A stretch of DNA of 64,000 nucleotides, from the sequence record OR805295.1; one strand, 5' to 3'. The stretch's first letter is position 1, and every line of letters begins with the position of its first letter. Shown piece by piece: positions 12,186-61,686 of this stretch. A model generated the notes under the pieces. It worked only from the letters and a program-made list of their open reading frames with translations, had not been told where the DNA came from and did not search any database. A program made the translations under genes and the position numbers.

Positions 12186-12622
12186 TTTATTTAATACGAT
12201 ACTAGACTATATACGGTATTCTTTTGTATGATATACAATGACAGTTGGGAATTTAAATGCTTTTTACAGTTGCTGCAAAGCATGCAAAATAACGCATACG
12301 TAAACAGCACAAAACACGCGCATAATGCGTTGTTTGTGTGCTTTGTGTATACTGCACTAGCATGCAAACTAGCATGCAAAATAACGCATTTTTGCAGCTA
12401 TAACGCTAGGGGTACGCATTCCTACAAATATAATAATTTGCTAGAATGATGTATATTTTTAAATTCTAAATTTAACCTATCCTATAATATACATTACGGA
12501 AATGTTACAATTAAAAATTTTATTATCTCAGACTTTATGCACATTCAATCTTATAATACTATATTAAATACAAATATATTTATTGATTTGCAAGTAACAT
12601 TTAACAAACGGAGTATATTTTA

Positions 12623-13847
12623 ATGGTCTCTGTTAATATACCGTTAATTGTATCTAATAAAATATATAAAATGGAATTTGAATATGGCAAGGATGATGTG
12701 TTATATTTGTGTATGTATAGTGACAATATTACATATCTACATAATATAATAGTCAATACAGAATTTTCTATGCTTTTTGTTCAATGTATGGGTAAAACTA
12801 TACCACTAGAATCGATATTATATATCCAGTCAAATATAAAAACAATAAGTGTGACTGATGATTATGGCTGTATAACCCTACATAACGATACATTTTGTTT
12901 ATGTACTGGATATTTTCAGGAAAAAGTTAAATTTTTTGCAGATTAAATATGAATGAACAAATTATATTATGTTTTCAAGCATGCATTAATAAATTTGCCT
13001 ACTTAGGAAACCCAAAAATAAGATTATTTAGAATCGGTAAAAGTGTCAAGATATCTGCACGGAATTATAATAATATGGATATAGGTTCGTTTGACAGTAA
13101 TTTGAAATTTTTATTATATATCGATAGTATCCAAGATATTGGAATATATGATGAAAATTTTATATTTTATATATCAATAAATTCAGACGAAATATCATTT
13201 TTGGGTTCTACAGGTACAGCACAAGTAGATACTGAACTTGGAATTACTATATTCTTTACCCGCACCAAAACATAATCCTAAATTATGATATTCATTGCAC
13301 AGCGACTATTATATAACATAACATATAATAAAAATACAATACTGTTCGGTTGTTTTAATAGTGGATATTTTTTAATTAATAGAAGAAGTGGTATTGGATT
13401 CTTATTTACAGATATATGTATGAAACGAATAAAATGCATTTATTTCATATTATATATTTCGCGTAATACTAATACTATAGGCAAAGATGCAATCTATATT
13501 AAAGATTTAGAACTACTCAGAGCAATGCACATACTTCGATGAATATAAATTTAATACTGCTACTTCAAAGATGTACGTCTGTAATAGGAGGATTCCAACG
13601 CGGCGGCGCAACACTTATCCATATTTATAGTGATTTTAATTTATCTGCTATAATGACGTTATACAAAAGAAGATGCAAATGCATTGTATTTACTGACATT
13701 TTGTTTAACGACATTAAAGACGGTTCTATAGATATCATTATCTATATAAGTAAGAATGCAAACCTAATACACGATAAATTTGCCTACATAGACACATCTG
13801 TTACAGATGAATCTTCTGTTCCTTTACACGATATGACAGGAATATGA
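12623..13847 (+). other. Four tandem ORFs of the ILxLQ small-protein family (12623-12946, 12949-13275, 13285-13542, 13539-13847)
   Basis: NLILLLQRCTSVI, IFIAQRLLYNI, ILYIQSNIKTI, IIYISKNANLI. Confidence 0.6.
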
Positions 13848-14329
13848 ATAATCCTATATATAATTTTATACTTGCAAGACGAATATGCAAACGGTATAGA
13901 ATAAAATTCAATCCTTTTGTAAAATTAGATACAGGAAGTTTACAAATAGATAACGCAGATAAAATAACAGTTAGCGTAAATGTATTTAATAGTAATTTTA
14001 TACCTATATTTTGGCACGAAATAGGGCATTATATTCATCATACATTAGTTAATTATAAAATTTATTTAGATTACTATACTCCTATTTGTCCTACACACGG
14101 GTATCTTTTATATAATAAGACACAAGATTTTTATAAATGTCTTTATTCCGAAATGTTTGCTAGTAGATTTGCACTAAAGGTATGCGGAGCAAAACATAAG
14201 AAATACCTCATAAAATGTTTTCACACATACACTTCTGCTGCATTTAAAACCAACATCGCCAGCCAATCCAAATTTACAAGATTTGTAGATTTTGTAGAAA
14301 AACTTTCTAGAAAATTAGATAGATATTAA
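13844..14329 (+). CDS. Zincin-like (HExxH) metallopeptidase
   Basis: FWHEIGHYIH followed by YSEMFASRFA. Confidence 0.6.
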   Translation: MNNPIYNFILARRICKRYRIKFNPFVKLDTGSLQIDNADKITVSVNVFNSNFIPIFWHEIGHYIHHTLVNYKIYLDYYTPICPTHGYLLYNKTQDFYKCLYSEMFASRFALKVCGAKHKKYLIKCFHTYTSAAFKTNIASQSKFTRFVDFVEKLSRKLDRY

Positions 14330-14665
14330 TATATGAACACTTATGATTATATAAGACAGAATAACGACAAAATAGTTACATTTGAAACCATATTACATAT
14401 AAGCAGTAGAAGTAGAGTAATAAGACTGCATTACAATTTTAGTTATATTTTACAACGAATGTCTCTAATTCTACCAGATAAACGCGGGAACCTGGTAATT
14501 AAATACTTTTATTACCGAAGTGTATGAAATATATTTCGTGTATATTATATAACTTTCTGTTCACTACTTATATAAAAGTACATTCCAAAAATATTGTAAA
14601 TATAGTATAGTTTTCATATAAAAGTATGCGTATAATTTGCACATATAACGCAATAGCACAGCAAC

Positions 14666-14800
14666 AAACAAAACGTAATAAAAAAATGTTGCAATAGCTT
14701 AAAAGTTTTAGTATAATAAGCACATAACAACGCAATACAGTTTACAAACAAAACGTAATAAAAAATGTTGCAATAGCTTAAAAGTTTTAGTATAATAAGC
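14666..14800 (+). promoter_or_regulatory. Tandemly duplicated sigma70 promoter of the tRNA cluster
   Basis: Two copies 79 bp apart of A-tract + TTGCAA-17-TATAAT (14689-14717, 14768-14796). Confidence 0.85.
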
Positions 14801-14832
14801 GTATAATGCAGCTTATATAACAAGTTAAAAAC

Positions 14833-14909
14833 CCCTCGGTAGCTCAGTTGGTTAGAGCGCGCGACTCATAATCGCTAGGTCACTGGTTCGAATCCAGTTC
14901 GAGGGACCA
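14833..14909 (+). tRNA. tRNA-CAU, Ile2-like (or elongator Met), copy 1
   Basis: Cloverleaf, anticodon CAT, GCGACTCATAATCGC arm as in Ile2, CCA end. Confidence 0.9.
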
Positions 14910-14931
14910 ATTTTAAGATGTTGTGCTTTTA

Positions 14932-15016
14932 GCCCGAGTGGTGAAATTGGTAGACACAGGAGACTTAAAATCTCCCGCTTCGCAGCGTACCGGTTCGAGT
15001 CCGGTCTCGGGTACCA
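14932..15016 (+). tRNA. tRNA-Leu(UAA), copy 1
   Basis: GGAGA-CT-TAA-AA-TCTCC, long variable arm, CCA. Confidence 0.95.
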
Positions 15017-15066
15017 AACAAAAGATATAAATACTTAACAAGATAGGAAACTATTCTAAAATTAAA

Positions 15067-15142
15067 TGGCTAGTAGCTCAGTTGGTAGAGCAAATGACTG
15101 TTAATCATTGGGTCGTAGGTTCGAGTCCTACCTAGCCAGCCA
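15067..15142 (+). tRNA. tRNA-Asn(GUU)
   Basis: AATGA-CT-GTT-AA-TCATT, CCA. Confidence 0.95.
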
Positions 15143-15168
15143 ATTACACTTTGTTGTATATTCAATAT

Positions 15169-15244
<76 letters not shown>

Positions 15245-15313
15245 ATTTTAAATAACATTTGTATCTAAAGAGATACAATAGTCTAAATAAAATATTCATA
15301 TAATGTTTCAAAC

Positions 15314-15390
15314 GGGACTTTAGCTCAGTTGGTTAGAGCGCGCGACTCATAATCGCTAGGTCACTGGTTCGAATCCAGTAAGTCCCACCA
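15314..15390 (+). tRNA. tRNA-CAU, Ile2-like (or elongator Met), copy 2
   Basis: Body identical to copy 1, different acceptor stem, CCA. Confidence 0.9.
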
Positions 15391-15440
15391 ATTTTTATAT
15401 ACAAATCAAACTATACTTAAACTATATAATGAATGAATAT

Positions 15441-15525
15441 GCCCGGTTGGTGAAATCGGTAGACACAGGAGACTTAAAATCTCCCGACGAAAGTCGTGCC
15501 AGTTCGAGTCTGGCACCGGGCACCA
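15441..15525 (+). tRNA. tRNA-Leu(UAA), copy 2
   Basis: GGAGA-CT-TAA-AA-TCTCC, CCA. Confidence 0.95.
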
Positions 15526-16387
15526 AACTCCTACAAAAGGAACATATTATAGTATGTTCCTTTTTTATTATGATATTTTTATTATGAATGAAATAATGCA
15601 TATATCTGCCAACACATACGTAATAGAATATCGCGTATTAAACAAGTTAGTAGTCACTATAAAAAATAATAGATCTTTTACATTATGGGTACATTTTGAT
15701 ATCGGTACATTTTCTATGGCATGGAAATACAATGCAATATAGAATTAAAAAATGAAATACATTATTAATTTACAATACTCAACAGAAGTAATATATATGC
15801 CGTGTTTCAACATAATATCGTTATGCGATAATAGATCTGTTACTATCCTTTCTATTACTATGATATTTAAGATAAGATACTATTTGCATCCGATGTTCCG
15901 TTATATTCTATAATACATAATATTTTTATTGTAACAAATACCAGAAGTGCTTAGATAATATATAGCAATTCTGTTTATTATCGATATTGCGGTATACTTA
16001 GTATTTCTTATTAACCGTATTACATAGAATAAAGAATGGAAAAAATTTTAACTATTTCACATAAAACATTAATATGTGAACTGTCGTTATTAAACTGGTC
16101 GAAATCCATAGTTTGTGCATATTCTGGCGAAATAATATGGTATGTTCGGTTGCATAAGAAATGTTATGTAGTACAGCTAAGATGATAATGAACTGTATTT
16201 TTTCCTATTCGTACTATTTAGAACGCATCGTATGTCATGCAAAAATCTACAAAGGGTTTGTAGTCAGTAAAAATACTTTTTGTGAGAAATCCGTAATAGC
16301 TTTATACTTAATAAATAGTGGTAGTTATTTTCATAAATGTTATGTCGATCATTACTTAATTGTATAGATATATTTTAATAAAAATAG

Positions 16388-16416
16388 TTGACCGAACAAA
16401 CAAAACAGTATATAAT
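16388..16416 (+). promoter_or_regulatory. sigma70 promoter for tRNA-Arg
   Basis: TTGACC-17-TATAAT. Confidence 0.85.
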
Positions 16417-16467
16417 GTTACGCATATAAAGCATTATTACAAAGCTATCATTAGTTGCACAAGATAT

Positions 16468-16544
16468 GCGCTCGTAGCTCAGCTGGATAGAGCATCCGCC
16501 TTCTAAGCGGATGGTCGGGGGTTCGAATCCCTCCGGGCGCGCCA
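16468..16544 (+). tRNA. tRNA-Arg(UCU)
   Basis: TCCGC-CT-TCT-AA-GCGGA, CCA. Confidence 0.95.
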
Positions 16545-17083
16545 ATTTTAAAGAGTGTTGTGTTATGCAAACAATAAGATTTGACATAAGACTTCTTCGT
16601 TATAGTATGAAACAAGGTTTCTGTTGCATAGGTAAAGATATATTTGAAGTGTGCAGAAAAACTCGGATCAGTCCAGGTCAGCTAAACTTACGAAAAAATT
16701 ATATAGGACGAGTATTAATCGGAATTGATTCGAACTACAATCTGCACAATACCTGTTTAGTAGGCTGGACTCGCTATAAAAATATTATAGTATAAAAATT
16801 TATATTAATAATATGAATAGATGCAAAGAACATCTACAATACAGAACAATCAAAAAGCATACATTAACTTGTAGGAAATGCAAAGAGTTATCGTTACAAA
16901 TAAAATTATTTTGGCTTCAACAACAAGCATTCAGTATTAGAACCGATACTAGCGGAATATACATATTCGATATTAAATATAATTCTATTTACGTATACTC
17001 TGTAGCTTGGTATAATACAGAATTATACGGTAAAGGGAAAATAATTTTAGAATAAACATGTATATATAAGAGTACCTCAAATA

Positions 17084-17416
17084 ATGAATAATTATTCTAA
17101 TGATACAGATATTCTAAAATGGATAAAGCGTAACAATAGAAAAAATGCACGTCTAATTTCATATATAGACGGAATATATAATATTGTTTATTTCGATGGC
17201 GGAAAAGCAAGAGTTGGCATAGTAAAAGACAATATGCACTGCAGATACGGAATACATAGTCGTGGATCTATGTATTCGAAAGATATAATGAGCCTGTGGC
17301 AATCTAGTACAGGTTCGTGTTCGCCCGATGATGTAAAGATTATGCAAGATTATCTAGACGATAAATGCATACTTCCGGAATTTGATTTTTCTCAGATTAA
17401 AAATTTAAAATGGTAA
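17084..17416 (+). CDS. Hypothetical protein
   Basis: 110 aa ORF with typical protein composition. Confidence 0.7.
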   Translation: MNNYSNDTDILKWIKRNNRKNARLISYIDGIYNIVYFDGGKARVGIVKDNMHCRYGIHSRGSMYSKDIMSLWQSSTGSCSPDDVKIMQDYLDDKCILPEFDFSQIKNLKW

Positions 17417-17439
17417 ATAATATAACAATATAGTTTTAT

Positions 17440-17516
17440 CGCAGGGTATGCAAGAGGTCTAAGCAGAAAGGCTCATAACCTTTTTATCGTGGGTTCGAAT
17501 CCCACCCCTGCAACCA
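17440..17516 (+). tRNA. Initiator tRNA-fMet(CAU)
   Basis: C1:A72 mismatch, purine11:pyrimidine24, CAT anticodon, CCA. Confidence 0.88.
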
Positions 17517-17525
17517 GTTTTATAT

Positions 17526-17602
17526 CTAGGCATAGCTCAAGTAGGTAGAGCACTTGCTTTGGGAGCAAGAGGTTGGGGATTCGAGGTCTCCTGCCTAGAC
17601 CA
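17526..17602 (+). tRNA. tRNA-Pro(UGG)
   Basis: CTTGC-TT-TGG-GA-GCAAG, C1:G72, CCA. Confidence 0.92.
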
Positions 17603-17611
17603 ATTTACTAT

Positions 17612-17684
17612 GCAGTCCTAGCTCAATTGGTAGAGCACTGTCCTTCCAAGTCAGATGTTACGGGTTCGAGTCCCGTGGGCTGCT
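17612..17684 (+). tRNA. tRNA-Gly(UCC), no encoded CCA
   Basis: Anticodon TCC, U73; followed by CAA; U:U mismatch in anticodon stem. Confidence 0.8.
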
Positions 17685-18424
17685 CAATATTCTAATATAA
17701 TTGATTGGTATATCTAATCGATGATTCATGTAGTGGATAAATATGGAAGTATAGTTATACCATCTAATATAACGGTGCTGGAAATACAGGCATACACAAC
17801 AGAGTTATTGTATGTAAGAAAATCTCATTGTTTATGTTTATACATTCCTAATATAGGAAATTATGCTTTATGGTTTTTAGACAGATAGGATAAAAATATA
17901 AATTGTTCTGTTTAAGGAACCAACATTAAATGGCAGGTTGCATATTTAGGCTCGATTTGTCTATTTTTCGTGAAAATGTATATAGTATTTCTAGGTTGTC
18001 TTATACAAAATCTATATGTGTTTCAATAACAACTAAACCGACAAGCAATAGAAAACAATTAGAAATATATGTTGTAGATAAAACAACTGATTTTTTAGTT
18101 GCATGCAAATATTTTTAGTTTATCTATTTTGACTTGCCTTTAAAATAAATAACCATTATATATTTGATATAATAACTATTCTAAATAGAAATAAAACCAT
18201 AAATACACATAATAACGGTGTGGATTTATGGAAAACATATTTAGGATATCTATTAATGCTAACGAAGGTATTATACGAATATCCCCTACTTACTTTTTTA
18301 ATGGTGTTTTTTATTCAAAGCATTTGAATATTTTTATAATAGATCCCGACGGATATTTAATAAGAAAAATATATACTTGTAGTACATTCTTATAATGATT
18401 TCTTTTAAATATACAAAATAACAT

Positions 18425-18453
18425 TTGACACAAGTATAATTATTTCGTATAAT
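18425..18453 (+). promoter_or_regulatory. Consensus sigma70 promoter
   Basis: TTGACA-17-TATAAT. Confidence 0.9.
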
Positions 18454-18484
18454 AAGTGCATAAAATATCAAAAGAGAATTTTAA

Positions 18485-18844
18485 ATGATTTCCAAAATTC
18501 AAATTGTATACGGAATATATCTTCCTACTGCTGATGCAAAAATTATATACGAAGACTCGGAATACGAATCTAATAAAATAAATAAAAATATTAGATTATT
18601 TGCAAATGATGCATATTTAGAAGATAAGATTTTAGAAAATAAGGAATTCGAAGATAATCCCTATGTTCCGCACTTTTATGGTATTTTTTGTAAAGAATTC
18701 GATAATGACCAAAGTGCATACTTATATAATGTTCCCAAATCTTTTATAGATGAATATAATAATGTAGCTCCAGCTATTTTGGCTAGACTCGGTTATTTAG
18801 ATAGAGTTGCAGGAAAACAACATTGTAGAATAATCTACGAATAG
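18485..18844 (+). CDS. Hypothetical protein
   Basis: 119 aa ORF downstream of consensus promoter. Confidence 0.75.
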   Translation: MISKIQIVYGIYLPTADAKIIYEDSEYESNKINKNIRLFANDAYLEDKILENKEFEDNPYVPHFYGIFCKEFDNDQSAYLYNVPKSFIDEYNNVAPAILARLGYLDRVAGKQHCRIIYE

Positions 18845-18858
18845 AATTAACTAGTTTT

Positions 18859-18948
18859 GGAGAGGTGATAGAGTCTGGTTTATTATACTAGTCTTGAAAA
18901 CTAGCGGATCGAAAGGTCCCGTGGGTTCGAATCCCACCCTCTCCGCCA
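18859..18948 (+). tRNA. tRNA-Ser(UGA)
   Basis: CTAGT-CT-TGA-AA-ACTAG, long variable arm, G73, CCA. Confidence 0.95.
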
Positions 18949-18953
18949 AATAT

Positions 18954-19043
18954 AGATACTTGACCGAGTGGCTTAAGGTGCTTCCCTGCTAAGGAAGTGA
19001 GTTTGAAAAAGCTCCGTAGGTTCGAATCCTACAGTATCTGCCA
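18954..19043 (+). tRNA. tRNA-Ser(GCU)
   Basis: CTTCC-CT-GCT-AA-GGAAG, long variable arm, CCA. Confidence 0.95.
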
Positions 19044-24049: not shown

Positions 24050-24346
24050 ATGGCAAATATAATTAAAATGAAACCGGTATTGTACTATGTAGGTGATAAT
24101 CCCAAAGGGGCATTTTTGTGCGAAATTTATGGCAAGGAATACCCATTTATCAATAATGAAACTAGATTTATTAAAGTTAATTCTATTTTTTATATATCTT
24201 TTATATCTGCTAAGTATACATATATAAAATTTCTAGTTAGATATAGATTTGTTACATGGAGGTTATACGACACTGATATTTATATTTCCTTTAGTAGAGC
24301 TATGACATCCGTTGAGCGGGAAATTAATAAAATAAGAGGAATTTAA
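24050..24346 (+). CDS. Hypothetical protein
   Basis: 98 aa ORF. Confidence 0.55.
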   Translation: MANIIKMKPVLYYVGDNPKGAFLCEIYGKEYPFINNETRFIKVNSIFYISFISAKYTYIKFLVRYRFVTWRLYDTDIYISFSRAMTSVEREINKIRGI

Positions 24347-24389
24347 AAAATGCGTTATTTTGCACGTTTGCATTATGCTATACGCAAGT

Positions 24390-24418
24390 TTGCAATAACG
24401 TGCAAACGCATGTATAAC
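24390..24418 (+). promoter_or_regulatory. sigma70 promoter upstream of tilS unit
   Basis: TTGCAA-17-TATAAC. Confidence 0.7.
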
Positions 24419-24651
24419 GCTAATACAGCTAACAATACAGTGCATAAAAACATGTACAGCATACTAGCGTTACAACGCATATCGTTGAACTATAAATGTA
24501 TATATATCTGGAGCAATATGGTATTCTTGTCAGTCACTACTGATGATACCTTAACTACATATCATATATATAGAAAAAGTTTAAGAACTGGTTTAGAATC
24601 GTGTAATTTTTCTTATGTACTTGGATTAGTTATGAAGGAAGGATATTAGGT

Positions 24652-42973: not shown

Positions 42974-42980
42974 TATTGCA

Positions 42981-43267: not shown

Positions 43268-43391
43268 TTGACTTTCCATTACTACGACCTTAAAGTGCGA
43301 ACTGTAGACGCAGTGTGTAGAGCGCTACATAGTAAGCAACGCAGAAAGTAAACAAAAAATGCTTGACGCAATGCAAACTAGGCTCTACACT
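43268..43391 (+). promoter_or_regulatory. Two tandem sigma70 promoters
   Basis: TTGACT-17-TAAAGT and TTGACG-17-TACACT, each with A-tract UP element. Confidence 0.85.
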
Positions 43392-43474
43392 GTATACAAG
43401 CTTAAGGGGTAGGTGCCCCGAAAGTGTAGTAAGTAAACAACATAATCCTTCCATCAGCTACAGAGGTATACAAC

Positions 43475-44179: not shown

Positions 44180-44194
44180 TTGCCCAACTGCGCC

Positions 44195-44223
44195 GAAAGG
44201 GGGAGCTATTGCTCCCCCTTTCT
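44195..44223. terminator. Intrinsic terminator
   Basis: GAAAGGGGGAGC-tatt-GCTCCCCCTTTTC. Confidence 0.85.
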
Positions 44224-45158: not shown

Positions 45159-47131
45159 ATGCAAACAACAATCGTTAATGCCCTAAAATCTATTAATGTA
45201 AAGTATTCGGATATATTTTACACAAATGGTAATTTGTGTAATACCGTTACAATACGAAATATTCGCAAAAACGGTAAATTAGATTCGGCAGAACAAATTA
45301 ATGTAGAATCAGTTGTGAGCAATTATTTGATTCAAAAAGATTTAAATTTGCCCTTTTCTATTCAATGGGCAAATAATGATTGCTGTGAAGAGTATACTAC
45401 ACTTATTCTCTTCTTCAGAAAATAGTGTATGATTAGATTAAAAAGATATGTTCAATTGCATAGCATATACAGATTGTCTTACTATGCGCACAACATACAT
45501 TTTAGCAAAACAAAGAAGATAATGCTTTACGTAGGAAACGCAGGTCCCGTACCCGTAACATGACAGTATATAGCGTTAAAATGTGCATTTTTTGCACGAT
45601 TTTGCGGGGTATGCGTTACAAGCAATACACACATACTGCTTTTAAAATGCATGCTTACATGCGCTTTGTAGGGGGTTTAAAACATGCTTAAATTAGTTAC
45701 CACTGTGCTATACAACGTCTGTGTAGCTTCGTTGATAATGATTGTGTTTGTATGTGGTATAAATTTAGTAATGTATATAGATAACAATACTGACAATAAT
45801 CCAGTTGTTATCTTTATTTCCCTTCTATCGGTTATTTGGGGCGTTGCGCGGTTAAGCTATATGTTTGTTACTATCCAATTTCAGTCCAAGAAATAAAAGT
45901 ATTGGTAACATATGATAGATAAAAACGGAAATACAGAAGACTTTGATTTTGATGATGCATGCACTATAACTGACCTGCCTGTTCCTCTTCAGCAAAAAAT
46001 ACAATCATATAAATTAAATAAAATATTGGTTATGGTTGCAATCCTTAAATATTCGAATATAAAACAAGAAATTGGATGTTTCGCTATCATATGGGATCAT
46101 ATAATAAAAATAACGGTTGAAATAAAATGCAATCCGTATGCAGAAACACACATACTCATGCATGCGCATGTATCTTCTAATTCCGATTCATGCACTCATA
46201 GCGTATTGCTGAATTACAGAAACAAATATTTACCCACTAATTATTATAATTAATATGGAAGATATTCTTAAAATTGCTAAACTAATCGGGTACGTAAACA
46301 TACATGCAAATAAACATTTTCGGTATGTTTTTAACAAAGATATGGAACATGTATGTGTTAGTGCTAAGAGTAGGACAAGTATAAACGGAATAAAATACCT
46401 TTATGTAGTAATGAATATATATTATATATATTGCCAGCAAGAAAGTGTTGCCGTTATATTAAACGAAGTAAACACCGATGAAATGCCTGTATTAGATAAT
46501 CTTTATGCTAAACTTAATGATTTAGTTACACATAAATCTATTATAAAATTTAAATATACAGAAATAACACAAGAACAAATAGATTTGTTGAATAATAGTG
46601 AAAGATATATAGTATATTTTGACGACTTTATTTTAGAATACGGAATAGCTTCGTTTTATTAATTTGAGGAATATATGAAAAAACAAACAGGATTTACAGA
46701 TTGGCCATTGATTAGTTTGGGTACAATTATTATCTTGTGTGTATGGGTATTAATTCTACAATACACAGAAATAAATGTACTAGAAGAAAAATGTAACAAA
46801 GTGGGTGGTATTTTTAATAACACCGTTTGCATACGGTCAGATGCAGTTATTAATTTAGATAAGGTAAAATAAAATGCCAAAACTTTACGTTAACAAAAAA
46901 CATGATACCATTTATCTTCAATTAGATCATTTCTCATCTAATACTGTATCTCCAATTAATTATAACGAAGATGTAGAATATGTAATTGATAGGATCCGTA
47001 GTCTGCACAAATCCGGCTTCGGATTTAGTCATATGAATACTCTACAAGAATATCTTACGGCAAGAACAGAGCAGGATAAGAAGTTTAAGCTTAAAGTAGA
47101 AGACTTCGAAGTAGTATCATTTAAGATTTAA
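45159..47131 (+). other. Run of small hypothetical genes (45159, 45684, 45912, 46255, 46675, 46874)
   Basis: Closely packed co-directional ORFs; two with hydrophobic helices. Confidence 0.65.
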
Positions 47132-48632: not shown

Positions 48633-48635
48633 AGA

Positions 48636-49342: not shown

Positions 49343-49891
49343 ATGTGGGATATCAAAGATGGGGATGATATCGAAGTCGAAGCAGTTATGGATGAACGAA
49401 GCTATGAGTGGACCGGCAAGTTACGTATCATCCAATATCGGACCCTTCAATCGGCTCAGTGGCGTGTTATTATCAATATAGTAGAATTTTGGAGTCATTC
49501 TACTGAAAGTATACTGAAAGAACTTGGTATAGAAGCTAAACACATTACTAAAGGATATGCCACACTTAGTATGGTTCGTTTCCCGGATGTTGATTACCTG
49601 TTTAGTGTAACACCCGATAATGCAGATTATGTAACTGTTAACCACAGTGCAGTAGATATTTCTGACAGTTGGTTTGTTGCAAAAAACATAAAAGCAGTTA
49701 TGTATCATTTGGGATCTGAAATCCAGATCACTCCGTGGTTTGTGCGTAAAGATAGTAGCGAGACAAATTTCAATTGTATTGATCGATTAGTAGCTCTAGT
49801 AAAAGAGAATACTGATGTTGACACGTATCAGTACATCAAGGTAGGTTGTCCTGAGGACAAGTCATTTTACTTTGCGTGGATAGACAAATAA
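49343..49891 (+). CDS. Hypothetical protein
   Basis: ATG 7 nt after AGGAG. Confidence 0.75.
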   Translation: MWDIKDGDDIEVEAVMDERSYEWTGKLRIIQYRTLQSAQWRVIINIVEFWSHSTESILKELGIEAKHITKGYATLSMVRFPDVDYLFSVTPDNADYVTVNHSAVDISDSWFVAKNIKAVMYHLGSEIQITPWFVRKDSSETNFNCIDRLVALVKENTDVDTYQYIKVGCPEDKSFYFAWIDK

Positions 49892-49980: not shown

Positions 49981-52287
49981 ATGAGAGAAGAGTTTGAAGC
50001 CGCGATCTTCGCGGAAGTGAATAAACAGCGCGCCGCCGAAGGTGAATTTGTCCTTCAGCATCCAGAGGGGCTATTTGCCCGCGATGACGATGGTTCCTAC
50101 TTGATCCGCTGGGTCAAGAGCGCATGGTGGGCCTGGAAAGCCAGTCGTGTGGCACTGACGCCCCGGACGCCCGATGTGTGCAGCGAGTGCAATGACACCG
50201 GGAAAGTCTATGACGAAAGCGGCGCCGGTCCGTGGAGTTGCTACGCCTGTACCGATAACCCGGAGGTGATCGGCTACGCAAACGGCGATGAGTTGGACAA
50301 CATGCTGGATGACCGCACTGCTGTTCTCTCTCCAAGGAAGACCAGTTTTCACACCGTGCCAGTGTATCGACTGATCCACACCCAAAACAAAAGTTTTCAA
50401 TAAAATCGATATGGAACTGGTCCTTCAAGAAGCCGAAATTGAGGTAGTGAAATGAGCAGACTGACCGCTGAACAAGCCCGTGACATAGCGCGAGCGAAAG
50501 ACGATGTCGATGCCATCCTCAACGACATCGCCAAGGCAGCCGCAGAAGGAAAGTACGTGTACACTACCCGCGCCTATGGGTTCGGTACAGGCGGCGGACG
50601 GCGCAGCGACGCGATCCTCAAAGTGTTGCGTAGCCTCGGCTACGACTGTGCGGTGCATGCTGAGGGACGCCAGTCTGTTGACCTGTGGCTTGAAGTGAAA
50701 TGGGGAGACAAGCCATGACTAACAACCCCGGAGATTCAAAAATGATCGTAGAAAACGCCAAGCAAGCCGCCGAAGACTTCAAAACTTCCATGGCTAAGAT
50801 TTTTCCGAATTACATCGCCAGGGCGTCGGTTTCCGATAACCTTGGTCCGGCGATGACAATTTCGTTTGCGAATGTCGGTTGCGCTTCCGAAGCCCCTAAC
50901 AGCATTCTGATAAATGCGAGCGGTTACATGCGCTTTATGATGCATTTGTGTGACAATTGCGGGAATGTATTGCCAGAAGGTTCGCCGGTAGAAATTGAGC
51001 TGCTAATGTGGTCTATCCCCTATCGTTCGGAAGTAATCAAGTTCCGCAAGATCAAGGGCAAGACACCAGCCGAAGCTATGCAAAAGCTAGTCAAGTGGTT
51101 TGAAAAAACGCCGAAGCTATCCGGGGTCTGTAATGGTCTCCACGTAGGACACGCAGAATGAACATTGTGTTGGACAAATTGCTGTTTGGCGGTTTCATCG
51201 ACCAGCACCGCAATGAACTTGCCCAGCAACAACTGAATCGGTTGTTTGCCAAGTACGGTGAGCCGAAGATTGGTATCACACGGGCATGCTTTCTATCTAA
51301 GCATTACGTCCTGAAGTTCCCGATTAATGACAGGGGTGAGCGGTGCAACGATTGGGAAGGTAGCTGTTCCGGCAGCTATTTGGCACGCGGACGCTGGCTA
51401 GAAATCGGAGGCTTCATTTGCGTCATGCAAGAGCGTTTGGTTGAAGTGGATTGGAAGAACAACACCCATGCAAACTTTCCTGATTGGGTAGGCAGCATAG
51501 ATTGTGGTCAAGTCGGCTACGATAAACATGGCGTTCTGAAAGCGTATGACTTCGGGTGAAGCATGACCATCAATTTGTTTGTTGTCAACATAAAGAACGA
51601 ACCTATCCCAACCGACCACAAGTCGATACTCCGCTATCTTGGCCTTAGCCTGCACACGCAAGGCCGTCGTGTATCTGCCAAATTCAGCAGCGGTAAGTTG
51701 AAGCTGAACAACTACAACATCGAATTTTTTCACATGGCGGAGATGATTCCATGACCGACACCAACAAAATAAAAAAGCTAGCAAAACTGGACGAGATCGA
51801 CAGGCTCAGGGCAGAGCGAGACGCCGCCCTGGCCAGGGTCGTAGAGCTGGAACGCGGCAAGGTCTACGTCGAAGCCCGGCAATGCGACGAGTGCCAGCAT
51901 AGCGGGATCAACGATTCCGCCACGGGCGTGGCTGCCTGCCACGAATGCGACTGGACCGGACCAGAGCCAGAAGAGGATAAGTGCCCCGGTTGCCAGAGGG
52001 AGAATTGCATGGCCGCAGCCTGCCCGCAGTGTGGTGCCCGATATGTCCTTGTTGCCAGCGAAGAGATAGCCGCCCCTGTAGCCCAGGCTCAGCACAGCGT
52101 ACCAGAGGAATGGCGCGACATGCTGGCCGAGCTGCAATGGCATTACGAGCCGTATGACGATCACCACCACACGCCCCAGGGCTTTTACTGCCCGCGTTGT
52201 GGGAGAGAACAGGACGAAGGACACAAGCCGGGATGCAAGATAGCCGAGTTGCTCGCCACTGTCGACCTCAAAGAAGACAAGAAATAA
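49981..52287 (+). other. GC-rich gene island (49981, 50452, 50715, 51158, 51563, 51751)
   Basis: Abrupt rise in GC; overlapping co-directional ORFs; 51751 has several CxxC motifs. Confidence 0.85.
51158..51559 (+). CDS. Minimal protein-kinase-like protein
   Basis: GITR...YVLKFP...NDWE...SIDCGQVG...YDFG. Confidence 0.45.
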   Translation: MNIVLDKLLFGGFIDQHRNELAQQQLNRLFAKYGEPKIGITRACFLSKHYVLKFPINDRGERCNDWEGSCSGSYLARGRWLEIGGFICVMQERLVEVDWKNNTHANFPDWVGSIDCGQVGYDKHGVLKAYDFG

Positions 52288-52328
52288 AATTCTAAATTAC
52301 TCGAACAAACATAATAGGAGCAGCATAC

Positions 52329-54831: not shown

Positions 54832-55066
54832 TATAAAGGGGGAATAATTCCCCCTTTATTTTTCTTTTATAAACATAAATAATTCGCATTTGCACCGAAG
54901 ATGCTTTATAACGCATAAATTTACATAGCTAATACATACATATTGCTAACGTTAAAAAGCGCATTATATAGCTTATAATTGCATATTGTGCAATGCATTT
55001 GTTGGTGTTATATTAAACATGCGCAACAATCAACTATACAAAAACATTTATTATGGAGATACAACA

Positions 55067-55740
55067 ATGAAAAATACACTGTGTCTCGTTGCATTTTTGG
55101 GTCTCACAGTAATAGCTCATACTTATGCAGCAGATTCTGCAAATAAAGACGTGAGCACCCTCACTATGGAACAGGATCTAGAAACATATCTAAGCGAAGA
55201 GTTTGGATTAACAGGGAAAGTTAATTGCAATAATGCCGTTAACGGAATGTTCGAATGTGTCATGCACGACGGACAAAAGAAATACATGTTTGCATGCAAT
55301 GCAGAAGACAGTGTATGCATAGTAGTATCTGTCCCAATTAAAGGAATTCGGTTATGAAAAAAGCTCTTTCAAGTGTAATAGGTATTATTGTTCTGTTACT
55401 AGGCGTGTTTATGGTAGATAATCCTACAATAGGATTAATGCTAGGAGGGTTAGTAGGTAGTTATATTTTCAGCATAGGCGGAGTAATTCTATGTGTTATA
55501 TCGTTTATGATATTTGCACTTGCCTTTGTTGAAATGAAATGAATGATTTATTTAAGTATTTGGACATTTGTATCTATAATAGTATCGATATATCATAATA
55601 TTTTAACTATAAAAATGCATAAACAGGTACTGTTGTATAAAGATTATACTTTTTATAAGGAAAGATTAGATTTTGTCTGTAATAGTTATATATTTTTCAA
55701 TGTAATATTCTTCATTTTCATTGCATGCGTTACAAAATAG
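55067..55740 (+). other. Secreted/membrane small proteins (55067-55357 signal peptide; 55354; 55543)
   Basis: MKNTLCLVAFLGLTVIAHTYA signal-like leader, Cys pairs; hydrophobic helices. Confidence 0.65.
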
Positions 55741-55799
55741 ATCACAAAAAGTTTTAAAATTCAGTTTACAGCATGCATAGTTTTACGTATTATAAACAC

Positions 55800-56065
55800 A
55801 CAAAGCAATACAGCATAACGCATTGTAAGCAACACTAAACGGGAGACACCGTCCCGCAAGCAGCCCGCCCGCGATGTTCGCGGGCTGCGGCAAACAGGTG
55901 TACAAGGTCTAGTAACGTGGAAGGCGCAGCATACCTTTCCTTAAATCGGAAATCGGTCAATGACGTACCTGCCCCTGGACACTGCTAGACCTTGCTGCTA
56001 CAGGCGGGACAGCTACAAAGGTACACTGTATGTATCTATGCTTTACCCCGCTTTGTAGCAGGTCT
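55800..56065 (+). ncRNA. Candidate ~260 nt GC-rich structured ncRNA
   Basis: TTTACA-17-TATTAT promoter; stems 55860-88, 55903-12/55985-94, 55996-56008/56047-60. Confidence 0.6.
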
Positions 56066-56341
56066 TAAAACGGTCTACTGGCATATGCCTTAGTGCTAGT
56101 AGGAATCATTAACCTAAAACTATTATATGCTTCCTGGAGGTGAAGAGTATGCCGCCGCAGCATTAAATATACATTATGATGATGATAATTATGAATGCCG
56201 AAACACCGCTTCGATTCGTTTAAAAGACAGATGTCTGAATCGAATGTTTTTGGGCAAAAAGGTCCCTTAAATGGGATTTTTTTGCGGCTGCTAACTAGCA
56301 AACGCGAATTAATCTTATTTGCAATTTAAGAAAAATACCAG

Positions 56342-58299: not shown

Positions 58300-60387
58300 A
58301 TGAAATACAAAATCATTCTTCAAAACCGTAGCAATGGTGTTGTCGCTGAATTTTCGGTAGATAACGAAATCAATCCCGAGATCATGGATACTTCTATTAT
58401 CGTTCATGAAGGGACGTCGTATATGTATACCGGCTCGGGTGGTTCTTACTACGATACCATTTATTTTAGTGAAATATATAAGACCACTAACACGACAGAC
58501 TTGTCGTTGCTATAACAGAAAACGCTTTACAATAGCTCTAAATGTGCTATTATGTAGTTGTACATAAAACAACGCAGGAGATTATATCATGCGTAGCACA
58601 CTCGGAGTAGAACATGCATCGAGAGAAATTCTTTCTGCATGGGTCGATGTAATGCAGCAACTCAACTGTGAGCATTTCTATAGCGAACTGAAAGACAATG
58701 CAGTTCGCTTAGATTTACAGGAATATATGTATACTGAACGTCTCGTTCAGTATTATACAGATCTTCCAGTCACTAATGCTGGTTGATGCCTTCGCCGGGC
58801 GTGAACTACATTTATTAGGAAAGGGGTTTTAAGCCCCTTTCCTTTTGAATGTTAAGTGTAAGTGCAAATTAATCTTATTTACTTGTTACAATTTAGTTCT
58901 TGAATTCACACATAATAGTATGTATAGTTTTAATATATAAGATACCAACATGCGAGGTTGTAAAAATGAAACTTCATAATATGAATGGTAATATTTTTAT
59001 TCGGTTTGAAGTAGATACTTCGTCGGATAATTTTGTAGAAAAAGTTTACGAAGAAATTATGCAGCTTCCTGCAAAATTGTATTTCGAGAAGATAGAACGT
59101 AGAACTTGGTTCTGTAGCTTTTACACAGGCTACGACGAATTGGTGGAATTCGTCAATGAAATAAAAGACAGAGTTAGTTCAGAAGGTGTTTTCTTTGACA
59201 GGCCATTGCAGCTAACTCTTATCAATTCGGGCGGGGTAGAAGTAAATATTTCCGATATAGAACCGGATCTTCACTATCTCTTTGATAACGATATTACAAC
59301 TACAAAACTTATCTCTATGGAAGGATCCTGCAATATGGTAGATTTGCTCATGTGCGAATGGGTACCTATTAGCATTCGAACTTCTATTGCTAAGGCATTT
59401 ACTGACAAATTTTTATAATAAAATACCTGTTGACGCATATAGCAATATGCGCAATAATATGCACGAAAGCAAGAACAGATCCAAATAACCTTTTTATAAG
59501 AGATTATATTATGTCTAAGTATCTTTCTTTTAGCGTAAACGTAGACATGGACAACACCGGTCTGTTGAAATGGTTGCGTCCTACCACCGGTCGGCTGGAT
59601 GGATTCGAAGAGAGTGTTAAAAATTTCGTTTCTTCTTTCCGCTCAATCGAGTCGAGCCCTACGGTGTTTCAAGTTTACGATGATGATAACCAGCCGTTGC
59701 AAGTAAGCAACATGAGCTGCTTCTTCCGATACTTTCCGGTGTACGGTATGTGCCTTGCACCGGGTTCGATGGTCAGGGAACAATATCGTCGGGAGATCCT
59801 CGACTATACTACTGACGAGTTCTGTTCATTCAGTAACTACTTCAGTGACGGCAAGGCCATCCGCGGCGGGGCAGTCTTGTGGTGGGATGTAGAGAAAGAC
59901 TTGGTATGGTCTGTTAGTCCCGAATTGATTCGCCTCGTATATGCCCGCTTGCAAAGTGATATGGACATCGGGTGGTATCATCTCGGGCAAGAAGTTATGG
60001 CTGTAGTTCCCCTTCGTTCTTATCCCAACGATGTTGCCCGATGGAAATATGTACAAGGTAATATCTGCGGCATCGACGATCAAGTGAGCATTCGCAGCAA
60101 TGTCGACGGTCGAGTCACCCGGCTTAATTGGGAATACATCGTTACCCAAGGGGGATAATATGGGCGGTCTTGCTAATATAGTTGCATGCATAGCTTCTAT
60201 TGTTGCAATTGTTACTGGAAATATCTGGTATTTTATCGCACTGTTGCTATGCACAGCATTTATGTCGCCCGAACGAAAAGGATCATTAATTGATGTATTT
60301 TCGGTCATTGTCGGGATTGGTGCTATATTTAACGGAGACATTGTATGGGGCATAGTGTTCATAGCATTAGTGATAATAGTTAAATAG
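58300..60387 (+). other. Early-type cassettes (58300, 58589, 58966, 59511, 60160)
   Basis: Promoters near 58526 and 59430 (TTGACG-17-AATAAT); terminators near 58818 and 60388. Confidence 0.7.
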
Positions 60388-60430
60388 AAAGGAAGGGGTT
60401 TAACCCCCTTCCTTTTATTGTAGGTGTTAA

Positions 60431-60580
60431 ATGTCATCAATTTTTTATCTTAGCAAATCAACAGAATACATAGTAATTTTAAACAATACAAGAATAAGGT
60501 TAAGTACAGCGAAATATTCTATAGGATATGTATCACTAGAAACACCTCGTCGCACATTTTACTGGACACTTTTTAAATGA
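60431..60580 (+). CDS. Outlying single-unit ILxLQ family micro-ORF
   Basis: MSSIFYLSKSTEYIVI, 49 aa. Confidence 0.55.
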   Translation: MSSIFYLSKSTEYIVILNNTRIRLSTAKYSIGYVSLETPRRTFYWTLFK

Positions 60581-61169
60581 AATACAATAATCGTATCTAA
60601 ATAGCTACCTACCTTTATATCAAAAACCATTCTATGAAATATATTTCCCAAATCATATTACAAAAGTTATATTTGAATTTTGGATTCTTATCTCAACCTT
60701 GCATTGCAATATAAAATGCGAATATGAGTGTGCTGTATGTGTTTGCATACGCATGTACATACGCATAAACGTATTAAGAAATACAATTTATTTTATCCTA
60801 TACGATTATCTTTAATACCTATATGTTGTTTGATAATAAAAGTATAATAAGTAAAAGACATTATCCATTGTATAATGGTTTTAATATATTTCGCTGTAGT
60901 GTCGGATGTATATATTTTTCATATGATAAAATGTCATTTATTCACGACATATTCATGCAAACCATTTCGTTGTTCCTTACGACGTTATTATTGTTTTTAC
61001 TTATAACTCCTTTATATTATATAGGATTGAAAAATCCAGTCAATATAACTACATTTGTTTCGTGTTTAATAATAACTATTCTTATAACAAGTTATTATTT
61101 TATGTCAGTTTTGACTTATATATTCTGTATTACCGTTCAGTCAATAATTTATAAAAGAAAGAAATAATT

Positions 61170-61280
61170 TAGTTTCTTTTTCATTATCAATATCTTTTTC
61201 TTTTTCAATATCTTTTTCTTTATCTTTTTCTTTTTCAATATCTTTTTCTTTATCTTTTTCTTTATCTTTATCTTTTATCA
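61170..61280. repeat. Pyrimidine-rich low-complexity repeat
   Basis: TCTTTTTCTTT and CAATATCTTTTTC units; minus strand reads KDKEKDIEKE. Confidence 0.85.
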
Positions 61281-61291
61281 TTGCAAATACA

Positions 61292-61396
61292 AATAATAAT
61301 TATTCTTATTTGCATTTAGTGATGTAAATAATTCTTATTTGTAATTGCGATTAATTCTTATTTGCTACAATAGATAGAATAAGAATAATTCACATT
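61292..61396. promoter_or_regulatory. Four tandem Fur-box-like 19-mers
   Basis: AATAATAATTATTCTTATT, GATGTAAATAATTCTTATT, ATTGCGATTAATTCTTATT, AATAAGAATAATTCACATT. Confidence 0.7.
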
Positions 61397-61686
61397 TGCA
61401 ATGCCGCTAAAAGCGCTGTAAGCGCTGTATGTTGCGTAGTAGTGCTAAGCAATGCGTTAGTACAGCTACGCGCACAAACGCTGTTATGCGCGCTTGTAGC
61501 GCGTTTTAGGGCCCATGCGCATGCGTATACCTGTAGCTTTACATAGTAAAATGCAGAAAAGACGTCGTCTATTAACGTGCCTGTCTTAATAGAAATATAC
61601 AATTGTACAATACCTGCGAAATCCTACACACTACAGACATGCAAACAAGCAATGTGCTTGCAAGCATAAAAGTTTTTAAAAAGTAG

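Follow-up and report, generated by a model that had tools for sequence, protein, structure and literature searches.

The stretch of DNA analyzed here (the window) is 64,000 nt of the genome of Pseudomonas phage Paride, a PA5oct-like jumbo phage (record OR805295.1, positions 124001-188000). The following features were located in it; positions are those of the window.

680-765, no strand: GA/TC-free tract of 86 nt between two plus-strand ORFs, with three TAACGC words and no good sigma-70 match
12250-12420, no strand: GA/TC-free tract of 171 nt, non-coding, no good internal sigma-70 match
14615-14836, plus: GA/TC-free tract of 222 nt immediately upstream of a 12-gene tRNA cluster
14689-14717, plus: sigma-70-type promoter TTGCAA-17-TATAAT in the second tandem unit of that tract
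14768-14796, plus: sigma-70-type promoter TTGCAA-17-TATAAT in the third tandem unit, 37 nt before tRNA-Met
14833-19043, plus: cluster of 12 tRNAs behind the tandem promoters of tract 14615-14836
24340-24482, no strand: GA/TC-free tract of 143 nt with inverted repeats, no good sigma-70 match
42536-42623, plus: GA/TC-free tract of 88 nt with TTTACA-17-TATACT (-35 at 42558)
45599-45718, no strand: GA/TC-free tract of 120 nt in the early region, no good sigma-70 match
49343-49891, plus: homologue of PA5oct gp52 (anti-END1), 96% identity
54901-55030, plus: GA/TC-free tract of 130 nt with TTGTGC-17-TATATT (-35 at 54986) and an extended -10 TG
55762-55843, plus: GA/TC-free tract of 82 nt with TTTACA-17-TATTAT (-35 at 55765)
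61391-61556, no strand: GA/TC-free tract of 166 nt, 49% GC, no good sigma-70 match

The tract before the tRNA genes consists of three units in tandem, each about 80 nt long. The 12250-12420 tract has a 19-nt direct repeat in two copies (12279-12297 and 12371-12389), a weak hairpin with a T run, and a promoter-like site directly downstream; the codon model finds no coding there and the ORF translation is not protein-like. The 24340-24482 tract falls between the stop codon at 24346 and an ATG at about 24518 where the next gene probably starts. The 45599-45718 tract extends 35 nt into a 70-aa ORF. The 42536-42623 tract lies at the start of the early, strongly transcribed terminal-repeat region and reaches 10 nt into the homologue of PA5oct ncRNA001 (42613-42848). 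The homologue of ncRNA002 (55812-56266) starts inside the 55762-55843 tract, and the 54901-55030 tract is upstream of a gene starting at about 55057-55067. Five of the nine tracts are in the terminal-repeat region. Its boundary (34528/34529) does not fall at a tract, and the idea that a tract is a physical genome end was rejected. Outside the window, three tracts of the genome are convergent-terminator spacers. All tracts are non-coding by the codon model, which together with the translations ruled out peculiar coding peptides.

GA and TC are missing from discrete non-coding stretches

There are 6072 GA and TC in the window (one every 10.5 nt) and 6210 copies of the mirror pair AG/CT, whose longest gap is only 80 nt. 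A reading of the sequence alone had listed six tracts lacking GA and TC, and this was borne out: each of the six (120-222 nt) has 0 GA and 0 TC but 7 to 21 AG and CT. Three shorter tracts (88, 86, and 82 nt) were added, giving the nine. The whole 287-kb genome has 13 GA/TC-free tracts that reach 100 nt or more. Shuffles preserving local composition (100 for each block size of 100, 200, or 400 nt) gave a genome-wide mean of 0.07-0.13 such tracts and a maximum of 2. Thus, the comparison with composition-matched shuffles stands at 13 tracts against about 0.1 expected. Tracts of this length lacking a control pair number 2 for AG/CT, 3 for AC/GT, and 0 for CA/TG. Chance or base composition is ruled out by these shuffles and mirror-dinucleotide controls.

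The counts of GA/TC per 100-nt window are bimodal in non-coding DNA only, with a separate mode at 0-2. Non-coding 100-nt windows with 0, 1, and 2 GA/TC number 43, 42, and 37 (0, 3, and 12 for AG/CT), and every coding window has at least 2. GA is normal in the majority of non-coding windows. The motif-free DNA totals about 2 kb of the 287-kb genome, in about 16 short non-coding stretches. In summary, GA is absent from both strands in a discrete non-coding set of stretches of the Paride genome, and the effect exceeds the earlier claim.

Avoided words, shared words, and selection

Is GA/TC the only word avoided? Against a GA/TC-free expectation, GG/CC is also low in the tracts (62 versus 139 expected, z = -9.0). 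This second avoided motif is GGC (11 versus 50) and GGT (20 versus 59), a depletion of 3- to 4.5-fold; GGG showed no depletion against the same expectation. Thus, the tracts are specific for GA/TC, with GGC/GGT second.

The nine window tracts were compared with those of four relatives, in genomes 2-3% apart (PA5oct is about 97% identical to Paride). Among 34 substitutions, only 1 creates GA or TC, where 8.9 are expected (P = 4e-4), while substitutions creating any other dinucleotide pair are as frequent as expected. Callisto and 30-3 have the sole GA-creating variant, which lies in tract 14615-14836 near position +12 relative to its last promoter; otherwise the tracts remain free of GA/TC in the relatives. 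The tract at 12250-12420 has 6 variant sites among the four relatives, yet it is GA/TC-free in all of them. Those at 54901-55030 and 61391-61556 have 7 and 9 variant sites, none creating GA/TC; 680-765 is GA/TC-free in PA5oct too, and 45599-45718 is identical in the four relatives. These results show that selection keeps the tracts free of GA/TC.

A passive loss of GA might also be considered, in which a modified base at GA is hypermutable like 5-methylcytosine at CpG. Across whole genomes, the odds of GA/TC are under 1 in the phages iggy (0.79), CAjan (0.87), and Paride (0.90), for which GA modification is reported or inferred, and 1.24 in phage 14-1, as such decay might predict. However, the loss is not general in non-coding DNA, which is bimodal with most windows normal, and new GA-creating substitutions are missing among the closely related genomes. 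AA/TT is raised only mildly (1.16). Mutational decay is thus very improbable.

The tracts are heterogeneous. They include AT-rich promoters, terminator spacers, and arrays of GC-containing words; the absence of GA/TC is their only common trait, and no motif common to all was found. The words TAACGC and ACGCAT are enriched 6- to 9-fold against GA/TC-free shuffles (z = 8-9). The 15-mer TGCAAAATAACGCAT has three copies, all within tracts (one at 24350-24364, minus strand). Each GC-word tract has direct or inverted repeats of its own, and 61391-61556 is rich in GCGC, AGCGCTGTA, and ACGCAT words. All G-containing purine-purine steps are low, so the tract sequence alternates between purine and pyrimidine. 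Genome-wide, TAACGC has 90 copies, of which 66 are singletons, and its clusters are modest. A single repeated mobile cassette was rejected, as the tracts have just short words in common. Structured non-coding RNAs were also rejected: Rfam gave tRNAs only, and fold z-scores range from +0.1 to -2.9 (just -2.2 and -2.9 for 24340-24482).

The tracts might therefore be arrays of protein-binding sites or a DNA-shape code, read by phage or host proteins with modification uninvolved. Operators, replication-origin iterons, or enhancer-like elements would be the candidates, and a vocabulary of TGCA, ACGCAT, TAACGC, and GCGC would exclude GA by chance. The persistent word enrichment, the tract-only 15-mer, the private repeats, and the purine/pyrimidine alternation all fit this idea. 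On the other hand, it would not account for tracts without one motif in all, nor for relatives whose tolerated substitutions avoid creating GA/TC and no other pair. In addition, the missing words are those of a modification context inferred independently, and they agree with the motif known from iggy. I regard the binding-site explanation as unlikely.

Probable DNA modification in the Paride and PA5oct lineage

The sequence-only reading had proposed that virion DNA is modified at GA, possibly with dPreQ0. PA5oct DNA resists restriction enzymes with GA- or GG-containing sites, and a preprint infers a "modified G in GA and/or GG" from ten restriction enzymes (10.1101/2025.03.31.646159). I checked the recognition sites. 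The resistant EcoRI, XbaI, and BsaI sites contain GA, and the resistant BmrI site contains GG. The cutters HindIII, FspI, BsgI, NdeI, and DraI have G only before C or T or at a last position of variable context, or no G at all. The resistance to ApaLI is trivial since there are just 2 sites. After this check of site counts, the restriction data fit a GA/GG context. Because HindIII also cuts fully 7-deaza-dG DNA, the context specificity is not proven.

Does Paride have genes for such a base? FolE (GTP cyclohydrolase I) is Paride_0051 (PF01227, E = 4e-60). QueD is Paride_0052 (PTPS, E = 2e-30), in which the CxxxHGH motif reads CRHLHGH and TIGR03367 scores below its cut-off; a second QueD-like copy, Paride_0056, has CSRIHGY at the motif position. 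A QueE-like protein matches phrog_2076 'QueE-like' over its full length (E = 7e-49), while the NCBIfam QueE models match it N-terminally only and far below their cut-offs. QueC is neither annotated among the 515 CDS nor present in the 27 proteins scanned. For DpdA, tblastn of Paride with the iggy and CAjan proteins gave a best E of 0.84, and Pfam on 20 candidates and Pfam, PHROG, and NCBIfam on the neighbours of the Que genes gave none. Against 50,697 phage records, iggy DpdA matched 240, with no Wroclawvirus among them. DpdL was rejected, as LxxxHRHxF is missing in both QueD-like proteins. In these searches, FolE, QueD, and a QueE-like protein were recovered, and no DpdA or QueC was detected. 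The inserting enzyme may be very distant from, or non-homologous to, DpdA. A phosphoribosyltransferase gene adjoins the QueE-like gene, which hints at a nucleotide-pool route; by itself, such a route is not context-specific.

PA5oct gp52 is anti-END1, which inhibits nucleases that target hypermodified DNA (10.1101/2025.03.31.646159). Its homologue in the window is indirect evidence that Paride DNA is hypermodified. Iyer et al. predicted that PA5oct has five Mom-type enzymes that modify adenine; the base modified in GA could therefore also be the A. Thus, the claim that GA is modified gains from the PA5oct preprint, the FolE, QueD, and QueE-like genes, the anti-END homologue, and the selection described above, while its dPreQ0 part does not, for want of a detected QueC or DpdA. 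GA appears to have a special status in this phage lineage.

The Mom-type enzymes point to a further possibility, namely avoidance of self-restriction. Phage nucleases would cut unmodified GA sites, and regions that the modifier fails to reach in time, because RNA polymerase or regulators already cover them in the first minutes, would have lost their sites. Iyer et al. described Mom domains fused to restriction-fold endonucleases, five of them in PA5oct. Two of five large Paride "homing endonuclease" ORFs match REase_MTES_1575/Vsr-like and HTH domains, and the direct selection against GA/TC also suits this idea. However, a bound protein would block the nuclease as well as the modifier, the predicted nuclease specificity is not known to be GA, and iggy has GA-depleted control DNA with no such fusion annotated. 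This explanation is distinctly unlikely.

Proposed modification-free islands and their promoters

The best explanation, to which I give a probability of roughly 55%, is that the tracts are modification-free islands in the phage's own GA-directed hypermodified DNA. The PA5oct/Paride group would hypermodify its own DNA at GA and, more weakly, at GG followed by a pyrimidine. Selection would have purged the motif from both strands of non-coding control regions, which would stay chemically ordinary B-DNA while the rest of the chromosome is modified. Host sigma-70 RNA polymerase and sequence-reading regulators could then bind the island promoters on virion-injected DNA; Paride has no RNA polymerase of its own. 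In PA5oct, the terminal-repeat region is transcribed by host RNA polymerase at 5 min, and ncRNA001 and ncRNA002, which lie behind island promoters in Paride, are abundant all through infection (PMC7318152). Islands with repeat arrays or terminator spacers would be kept unmodified for other, putative proteins. The hypermodification and its GA/GG context are taken from the literature; that the islands are unmodified, and retained for that reason, is my inference. The mechanism assumed is an initiation block by bulky 7-substituents: 7-vinyl-, 7-ethynyl-, and 7-phenyl-7-deazaguanine nearly abolish sigma-70/sigma-A initiation and leave elongation unaffected (Raindlova et al. 2016, PMC4838386). In those experiments, each G of a PCR template carried a synthetic substituent, unlike natural phage bases placed at GA only.

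Two phages with known motifs were compared. In iggy, DpdA places dPreQ0 at a strict GA motif, and 97% of these sites are modified (Olsen et al. 2023, PMC10484667). The host species and the dinucleotide are the same as for Paride, whereas iggy has the full FolE-QueD-QueE-QueC-DpdA set and Paride lacks a detectable QueC and DpdA. In the annotated intergenic DNA of iggy, the odds are 0.57 for GA/TC and 0.91 for AG/CT, and the terminal control region is nearly GA-free, at about 1.8 GA/TC per 100 nt. This phage has GA/TC-free tracts of 108-171 nt, in which no other word is depleted, mirroring its motif. The longest of them is low-complexity coding DNA rich in Q and P, and amino-acid composition may explain it. 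Escherichia phage CAjan has dPreQ0 at GA and GGC and, more weakly, at GGT (Kot et al. 2020, PMC7544227). The target set of its DpdA is the set of words avoided in the Paride tracts, and the depletion of GGC/GGT thus matches both this specificity and the "GA and/or GG" of the PA5oct preprint. In contrast, CAjan has no GA/TC-free islands (longest gap 81 nt, reached in 5 of 200 shuffles; intergenic odds 0.82), which counts against the island interpretation.

No GA/TC-free tracts of this kind occur in phage 14-1, which shares its host species with Paride and has a reported T modification in TG. It has no TG/CA-free tracts either, and motif-free islands as a universal rule were rejected. NP1 was rejected as support: both of its GA/TC-free tracts fall within low-complexity or annotated coding DNA, Q/P-rich and possibly explained by amino-acid composition, and its intergenic odds are 0.96. 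Phage 14-1 also bears on another suggestion of the sequence-only reading, that the tracts avoid a host defence, either TC-preferring DNA deaminases or DarT-type thymidine ADP-ribosylation. GA and TC are both missing, as a TC-directed activity reaching either strand would predict. However, shielding about 2 kb of 287 kb would leave the phage unprotected, 14-1 has GA/TC odds of 1.24, and the depletion of GGC/GGT is left unexplained. Host-defence avoidance found no support here and is scarcely credible.

Vertebrate CpG islands offer an analogy only: they are short regulatory stretches whose dinucleotide content is shaped by a dinucleotide-directed modification, with unmodified promoters. They keep the target dinucleotide unmethylated, whereas the Paride islands lack the target; moreover, the bulk Paride genome is not depleted by decay and the biology is unrelated. 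Restriction-site avoidance in phages is similar in that selection removes a short word because of an enzyme acting on it. Classical avoidance is genome-wide and concerns host-enzyme palindromes of 4-6 bp, while in Paride a 2-nt word is wholly removed from just the motif-free stretches. Targeted text searches of the iggy paper (PMC10484667) found no mention of motif-free regions, and similar searches of the CAjan, END-nuclease, and PA5oct papers found no description of the islands.

Provided that this view of the islands is right, the genome sequence alone tells which motif a hypermodification targets; for the Paride lineage it would be GA, then GGC and GGT. The islands would mark the only unmodified stretches of the chromosome, bear on how host RNA polymerase initiates on hypermodified DNA, and still be open to restriction enzymes or CRISPR effectors. 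Paride is of interest as it kills dormant P. aeruginosa, and promoters or reporters inserted in phage engineering would need the same GA-free rule.

Are the tracts promoters? The GA-free -35 boxes noted from the sequence, TTGCAA (twice), TTTACA, and TTGTGC, were all located. Good sigma-70 promoters (-35/-10, spacer of 16-18 nt, facing the downstream gene) occur in four of the nine window tracts: 14615-14836 (two promoters), 42536-42623, 54901-55030, and 55762-55843. They serve the tRNA operon, ncRNA001, the gene near 55060, and ncRNA002. In public contigs, RNA depth rises across the tRNA tract 14615-14836 (one contig collapses an 81-nt promoter unit). The annotated starts of ncRNA001 and ncRNA002 lie 12-20 nt past the predicted promoter starts. 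No good match was found in the other five (12250-12420, 24340-24482, 45599-45718, 61391-61556, and 680-765). The description of the six listed tracts as promoter regions thus holds for 14615-14836 and 54901-55030 and not for the other four, which counts against the islands as promoter shields. As a general rule it fails, since terminator spacers are among the tracts and many consensus TTGACA-17-TATAAT promoters elsewhere in the genome contain GA at normal GA density. One GA-containing TTGACA promoter is even in the early region, at 47153.

It is rather doubtful, though conceivable, that motif-free islands form a cis-regulatory layer of motif-specifically hypermodified phages, in which GA-free promoters are blind to the modification state. 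Such promoters would be active on the fully modified DNA that is injected and at all later stages of infection, driving tRNAs, ncRNA001, ncRNA002, and early genes. Promoters with TTGACA, which has GA in the -35 box, would be tuned by whether the DNA is already modified, which would tie replication and modification to the temporal programme.

Tracts without GA and TC in the Paride genome

The window is identical (100%) to positions 124001-188000 of OR805295.1, the genome of Paride, a PA5oct-like jumbo phage (Wroclawvirus) of 287 kb with 32-33% G+C and 96.5-99.6% identity to ten relatives. I analyzed the whole Paride genome together with the homologous region from PA5oct, Callisto, 30-2, and 30-3. 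The sequence-only reading had named six tracts in which GA and TC are missing while AG and CT are present, and this proved correct: each has 0 GA and 0 TC, with an AG+CT count of 7-21 per tract. Their full extents are 222, 171, 166, 143, 130, and 120 nt, and three further tracts of 88, 86, and 82 nt were found in the window. There, GA+TC occurs once per 10.5 nt, and AG/CT is equally frequent with a longest gap of 80 nt. Genome-wide, 13 tracts of at least 100 nt were observed, while shuffles preserving composition within blocks of 100-400 nt, the check proposed at the outset, gave a mean of 0.07-0.13 and a maximum of 2. Chance is excluded as the origin of the tracts. The control pairs AG/CT, AC/GT, and CA/TG have 2, 3, and 0 tracts of this length.

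Among non-coding 100-nt windows, 43, 42, and 37 have 0, 1, and 2 GA/TC, and the rest form a bell-shaped distribution around 9; the same AG/CT counts were found in 0, 3, and 12 windows, and coding windows never have fewer than 2 GA/TC. Since the distribution is bimodal, the tracts are a discrete class and not the tail of a general depletion (GA/TC odds are 0.81 across all non-coding DNA). All 13 tracts are non-coding according to a codon-usage model. Three are overlaid by small ORFs in the Paride record, whose translations are non-protein-like strings, and the two tracts compared with the Callisto annotation (12250-12420 and 14615-14836) are left unannotated there.

There are three kinds of tract: AT-rich promoter islands, GC-word islands, and terminator spacers.

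Tracts by kind (window positions unless marked as genome)
14615-14836: promoter island; three tandem ~80-nt units, two of the three with TTGCAA-17-TATAAT (promoters at 14689 and 14768); runs up to the first of 12 tRNA genes
42536-42623: promoter island; TTTACA-17-TATACT (at 42558); ends 10 nt within the ncRNA001 homologue
54901-55030: promoter island; TTGTGC-17-TATATT (at 54986) with an extended -10
55762-55843: promoter island; TTTACA-17-TATTAT (at 55765); the ncRNA002 homologue begins inside
12250-12420: GC-word island
24340-24482: GC-word island
45599-45718: GC-word island
61391-61556: GC-word island
Genome 110598-110746: GC-word island
Genome 52410: terminator spacer between convergent genes, with hairpin terminator
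Genome 61872: terminator spacer, likewise
Genome 111568: terminator spacer, likewise

Thus, the proposed location at promoter regions holds for the four AT-rich islands but not for the GC-word islands, which have no good sigma-70 match, or the three terminator spacers. The GA-free -35 boxes noticed in the tracts (TTGCAA, TTTACA, and TTGTGC) were all found. Promoters with the consensus TTGACA-17-TATAAT abound in non-coding DNA, at ordinary GA density, and the fourth -35 base is A in 33 of 64 candidate promoters of non-coding DNA; TTGACA promoters at 18425 and 47153 of the window are examples. In PA5oct, ncRNA001 and ncRNA002 each contribute 1-5% of the phage reads, whichever of the three time points is considered (PMC7318152). 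One public RNA-seq contig from a PA5oct-like infection skips 81 nt at 14679-14761, exactly one tandem promoter unit, which reflects either a two-unit strain or an assembly collapse.

The direct terminal repeat of PA5oct occupies positions 1-39080 of its record. Since the first base of PA5oct corresponds to window position 34529, the window from about 34.5 kb onwards is terminal-repeat DNA. The region from about 41.5 kb (PA5oct gp34) is strongly transcribed 5 min post infection, and PA5oct is rifampicin-sensitive and has no RNA polymerase of its own (PMC7318152). A tandem array at 34062-34494 (units of about 67, 39, and 20 nt in 2-5 copies), part of which is labelled "CRISPR" in the Paride record, stops 34 nt short of the left end of the 39-kb repeat (34528/34529) and has a strong strand asymmetry (GA 42 vs TC 4). 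This is probably a repeat connected with the terminus or with packaging rather than a CRISPR array. The 3.1 kb at 37624-40747 lack any ORF of at least 60 aa, and the annotation there consists of about 25 ORFs of 30-55 aa arranged head to tail. Three G+C-rich islands at 42600-44200, 50000-52300, and 62000-64000 reach 44%, 53%, and 46% G+C (2-kb windows) vs 32% for the genome; the first opens with the ncRNA001 homologue, and ORFs from each of the three had no Pfam match.

Substitutions and words in the tracts

The nine window tracts stay free of GA and TC in the four relatives with one exception, a T>G change downstream of the last tRNA promoter that both Callisto and 30-3 carry. Of 34 distinct substitutions within these tracts, this single one creates GA or TC, while 8.9 are expected if changes are drawn at random in the observed proportions of transitions and transversions (binomial P = 4e-4). 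All nine other dinucleotide classes were created and destroyed as expected, the nearest deviation being AG/CT (4 vs 7.6). Since the test conditions on tolerated changes, it supports avoidance of GA/TC itself and not merely conserved motifs. Passive decay of GA as a hypermutable dinucleotide is very unlikely, because genomes 2-3% apart should still gain new GA, and such changes are missing (1 vs 8.9).

The pooled tracts have dinucleotide odds of 3.2 for GC, 0.62 for GG/CC, and 0.78 for AG/CT. Compared with shuffles themselves held free of GA/TC, the tracts are poor in GG/CC (62 vs 139 expected, z = -9.0), GGC/GCC (11 vs 50, z = -8.5), and GGT/ACC (20 vs 59, z = -6.1) and rich in GC (z = 7.5); GGG/CCC is at the expected level, mostly within terminator stems. 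Thus, G is tolerated before C or T and avoided before purines, and only as GC is a G:C pair safe on either strand irrespective of neighbours. The most economical account is that the islands are kept devoid of the motif at which the phage modifies its own DNA, to which I would assign a probability of about 0.55. Each GC-word island has its own direct or inverted repeats, while TAACGC and ACGCAT are common to these islands (z = 8-9), and all three occurrences of the exact 15-mer TGCAAAATAACGCAT fall within tracts. It is rather unlikely that the tracts represent a binding or shape code independent of modification.

Restriction data and candidate modification genes

According to a 2025 preprint, END nucleases, whose action is limited to hypermodified phages, restrict PA5oct, and a modified G in GA and/or GG was inferred for it; its gp52 inhibits nucleases targeting hypermodified DNA (10.1101/2025.03.31.646159). 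Paride has a homologue of this anti-END1 protein at 49343-49891 (96% identity). That the tracts instead escape a TC-directed host defence, as also suggested from the sequence, is highly improbable. Resistance of PA5oct to ApaLI is meaningless, because Paride has only 2 GTGCAC sites (24 expected from composition). As for the other resistant enzymes, GA is present in the EcoRI, XbaI, and BsaI sites and GG in the BmrI site. In the sites of the cutters HindIII, FspI, BsgI, NdeI, and DraI, any G is followed by C or T or stands last, with a variable base after it, or G is missing altogether. However, HindIII also cuts fully 7-deaza-dG DNA, and thus the restriction pattern alone is no proof of context specificity. 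HindIII sites number 50 vs 98 expected in Paride, and BsgI sites 114 vs 54.

Outside the window, Paride encodes FolE, a QueD with CxxxHGH, a second QueD-like protein with CSRIHGY, and a QueE-like radical-SAM protein, in two pieces of its record.

L002 47694-49601 (record 97694-99601): deazapurine-type genes of this set
L001 39822-43260: deazapurine-type genes of this set

Directly upstream of the QueE-like gene are genes for a xanthine-PRTase-like and a short epimerase-like protein; the phosphoribosyltransferase in this position is presumably reminiscent of the nucleotide-level pathway by which pyrrolopyrimidine nucleosides are made. tblastn with the iggy and CAjan DpdA found no DpdA in Paride, no Wroclawvirus is among 240 DpdA-matching phage records, and QueC is absent among 515 annotated CDS and 27 profile-scanned proteins. 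The hypothesis of modification at GA agrees with the GA/GG context inferred for PA5oct and with the tract words, but dPreQ0 as the modified base is not supported, DpdA and QueC having been missed in these searches. The deazapurine genes without these two may represent a nucleotide-level route to 7-deazapurine, which alone would not give a GA context.

Iyer et al. counted in PA5oct five predicted Mom-type adenine-acylating enzymes fused to restriction-fold nucleases; therefore, the modified base in GA could be A. Paride has five ORFs of 498-611 aa that carry the annotation "homing endonuclease".

L001 9009-10844: "homing endonuclease" ORF
L002 40287-41969: "homing endonuclease" ORF
L003 7815-9311: "homing endonuclease" ORF
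L005 45568-47145: "homing endonuclease" ORF
L006 29823-31439: "homing endonuclease" ORF

Two of the five have REase_MTES_1575/Vsr-like and HTH matches, and the five are probably the fusions counted in PA5oct. Avoidance of the phage's own nucleases is an unlikely cause of the tracts. As for the motif-free islands favoured here, 7-vinyl-, 7-ethynyl-, and 7-phenyl-7-deazaguanine nearly abolish sigma-70/sigma-A transcription at initiation, whereas elongation is unaffected and plain 7-deazaguanine is tolerated (Raindlova et al., PMC4838386). This offers a reason for control DNA, in contrast to gene bodies, to stay clear of a base with a bulky 7-substituent.

Comparison with other phages

The reported target set of the CAjan DpdA (GA, GGC, and GGT; PMC10484667) coincides with the words scarce in the Paride tracts, and the order of avoidance (GA first, GG second) matches the GA and/or GG inferred for PA5oct. 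However, CAjan itself has no GA/TC-free tract (longest gap 81 nt). In iggy, dPreQ0 is strictly in GA, with 97% of GA sites modified (PMC10484667). I found five iggy tracts of 108-171 nt vs 0.00-0.01 expected, although the longest is within a coding tail rich in Q and P, whose composition may be cause enough. Annotated intergenic DNA of iggy has GA/TC odds of 0.57 vs 0.91 for AG/CT, and GA/TC is nearly missing from its terminal control region (530 nt with about 1.8 GA/TC per 100 nt vs 8-9 AG/CT).

iggy 59948-60628 (L008 9948-10628): terminal control region
iggy 1-309 (L007 1-309): terminal control region

No word besides GA/TC is depleted in the iggy tracts, in line with its one-word motif. Phage 14-1, which shares its host with Paride and has a reported modification of T in TG, lacks tracts free of GA/TC (the longest gap is 56 nt, with intergenic odds of 1.09) as well as tracts free of TG/CA. 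NP1 has two GA/TC-free tracts, each within DNA that is of low complexity or annotated as coding (intergenic odds 0.96). Cross-phage support is real for iggy, whereas CAjan and NP1 provide none; such tracts are not a universal feature. A GA/TC-free, Q/P/A-rich low-complexity tail is present in both NP1 (L018 39698-39841) and iggy (L007 42700-42870); the NP1 tail lies in an annotated gap and resembles an unannotated extension of a coding region.
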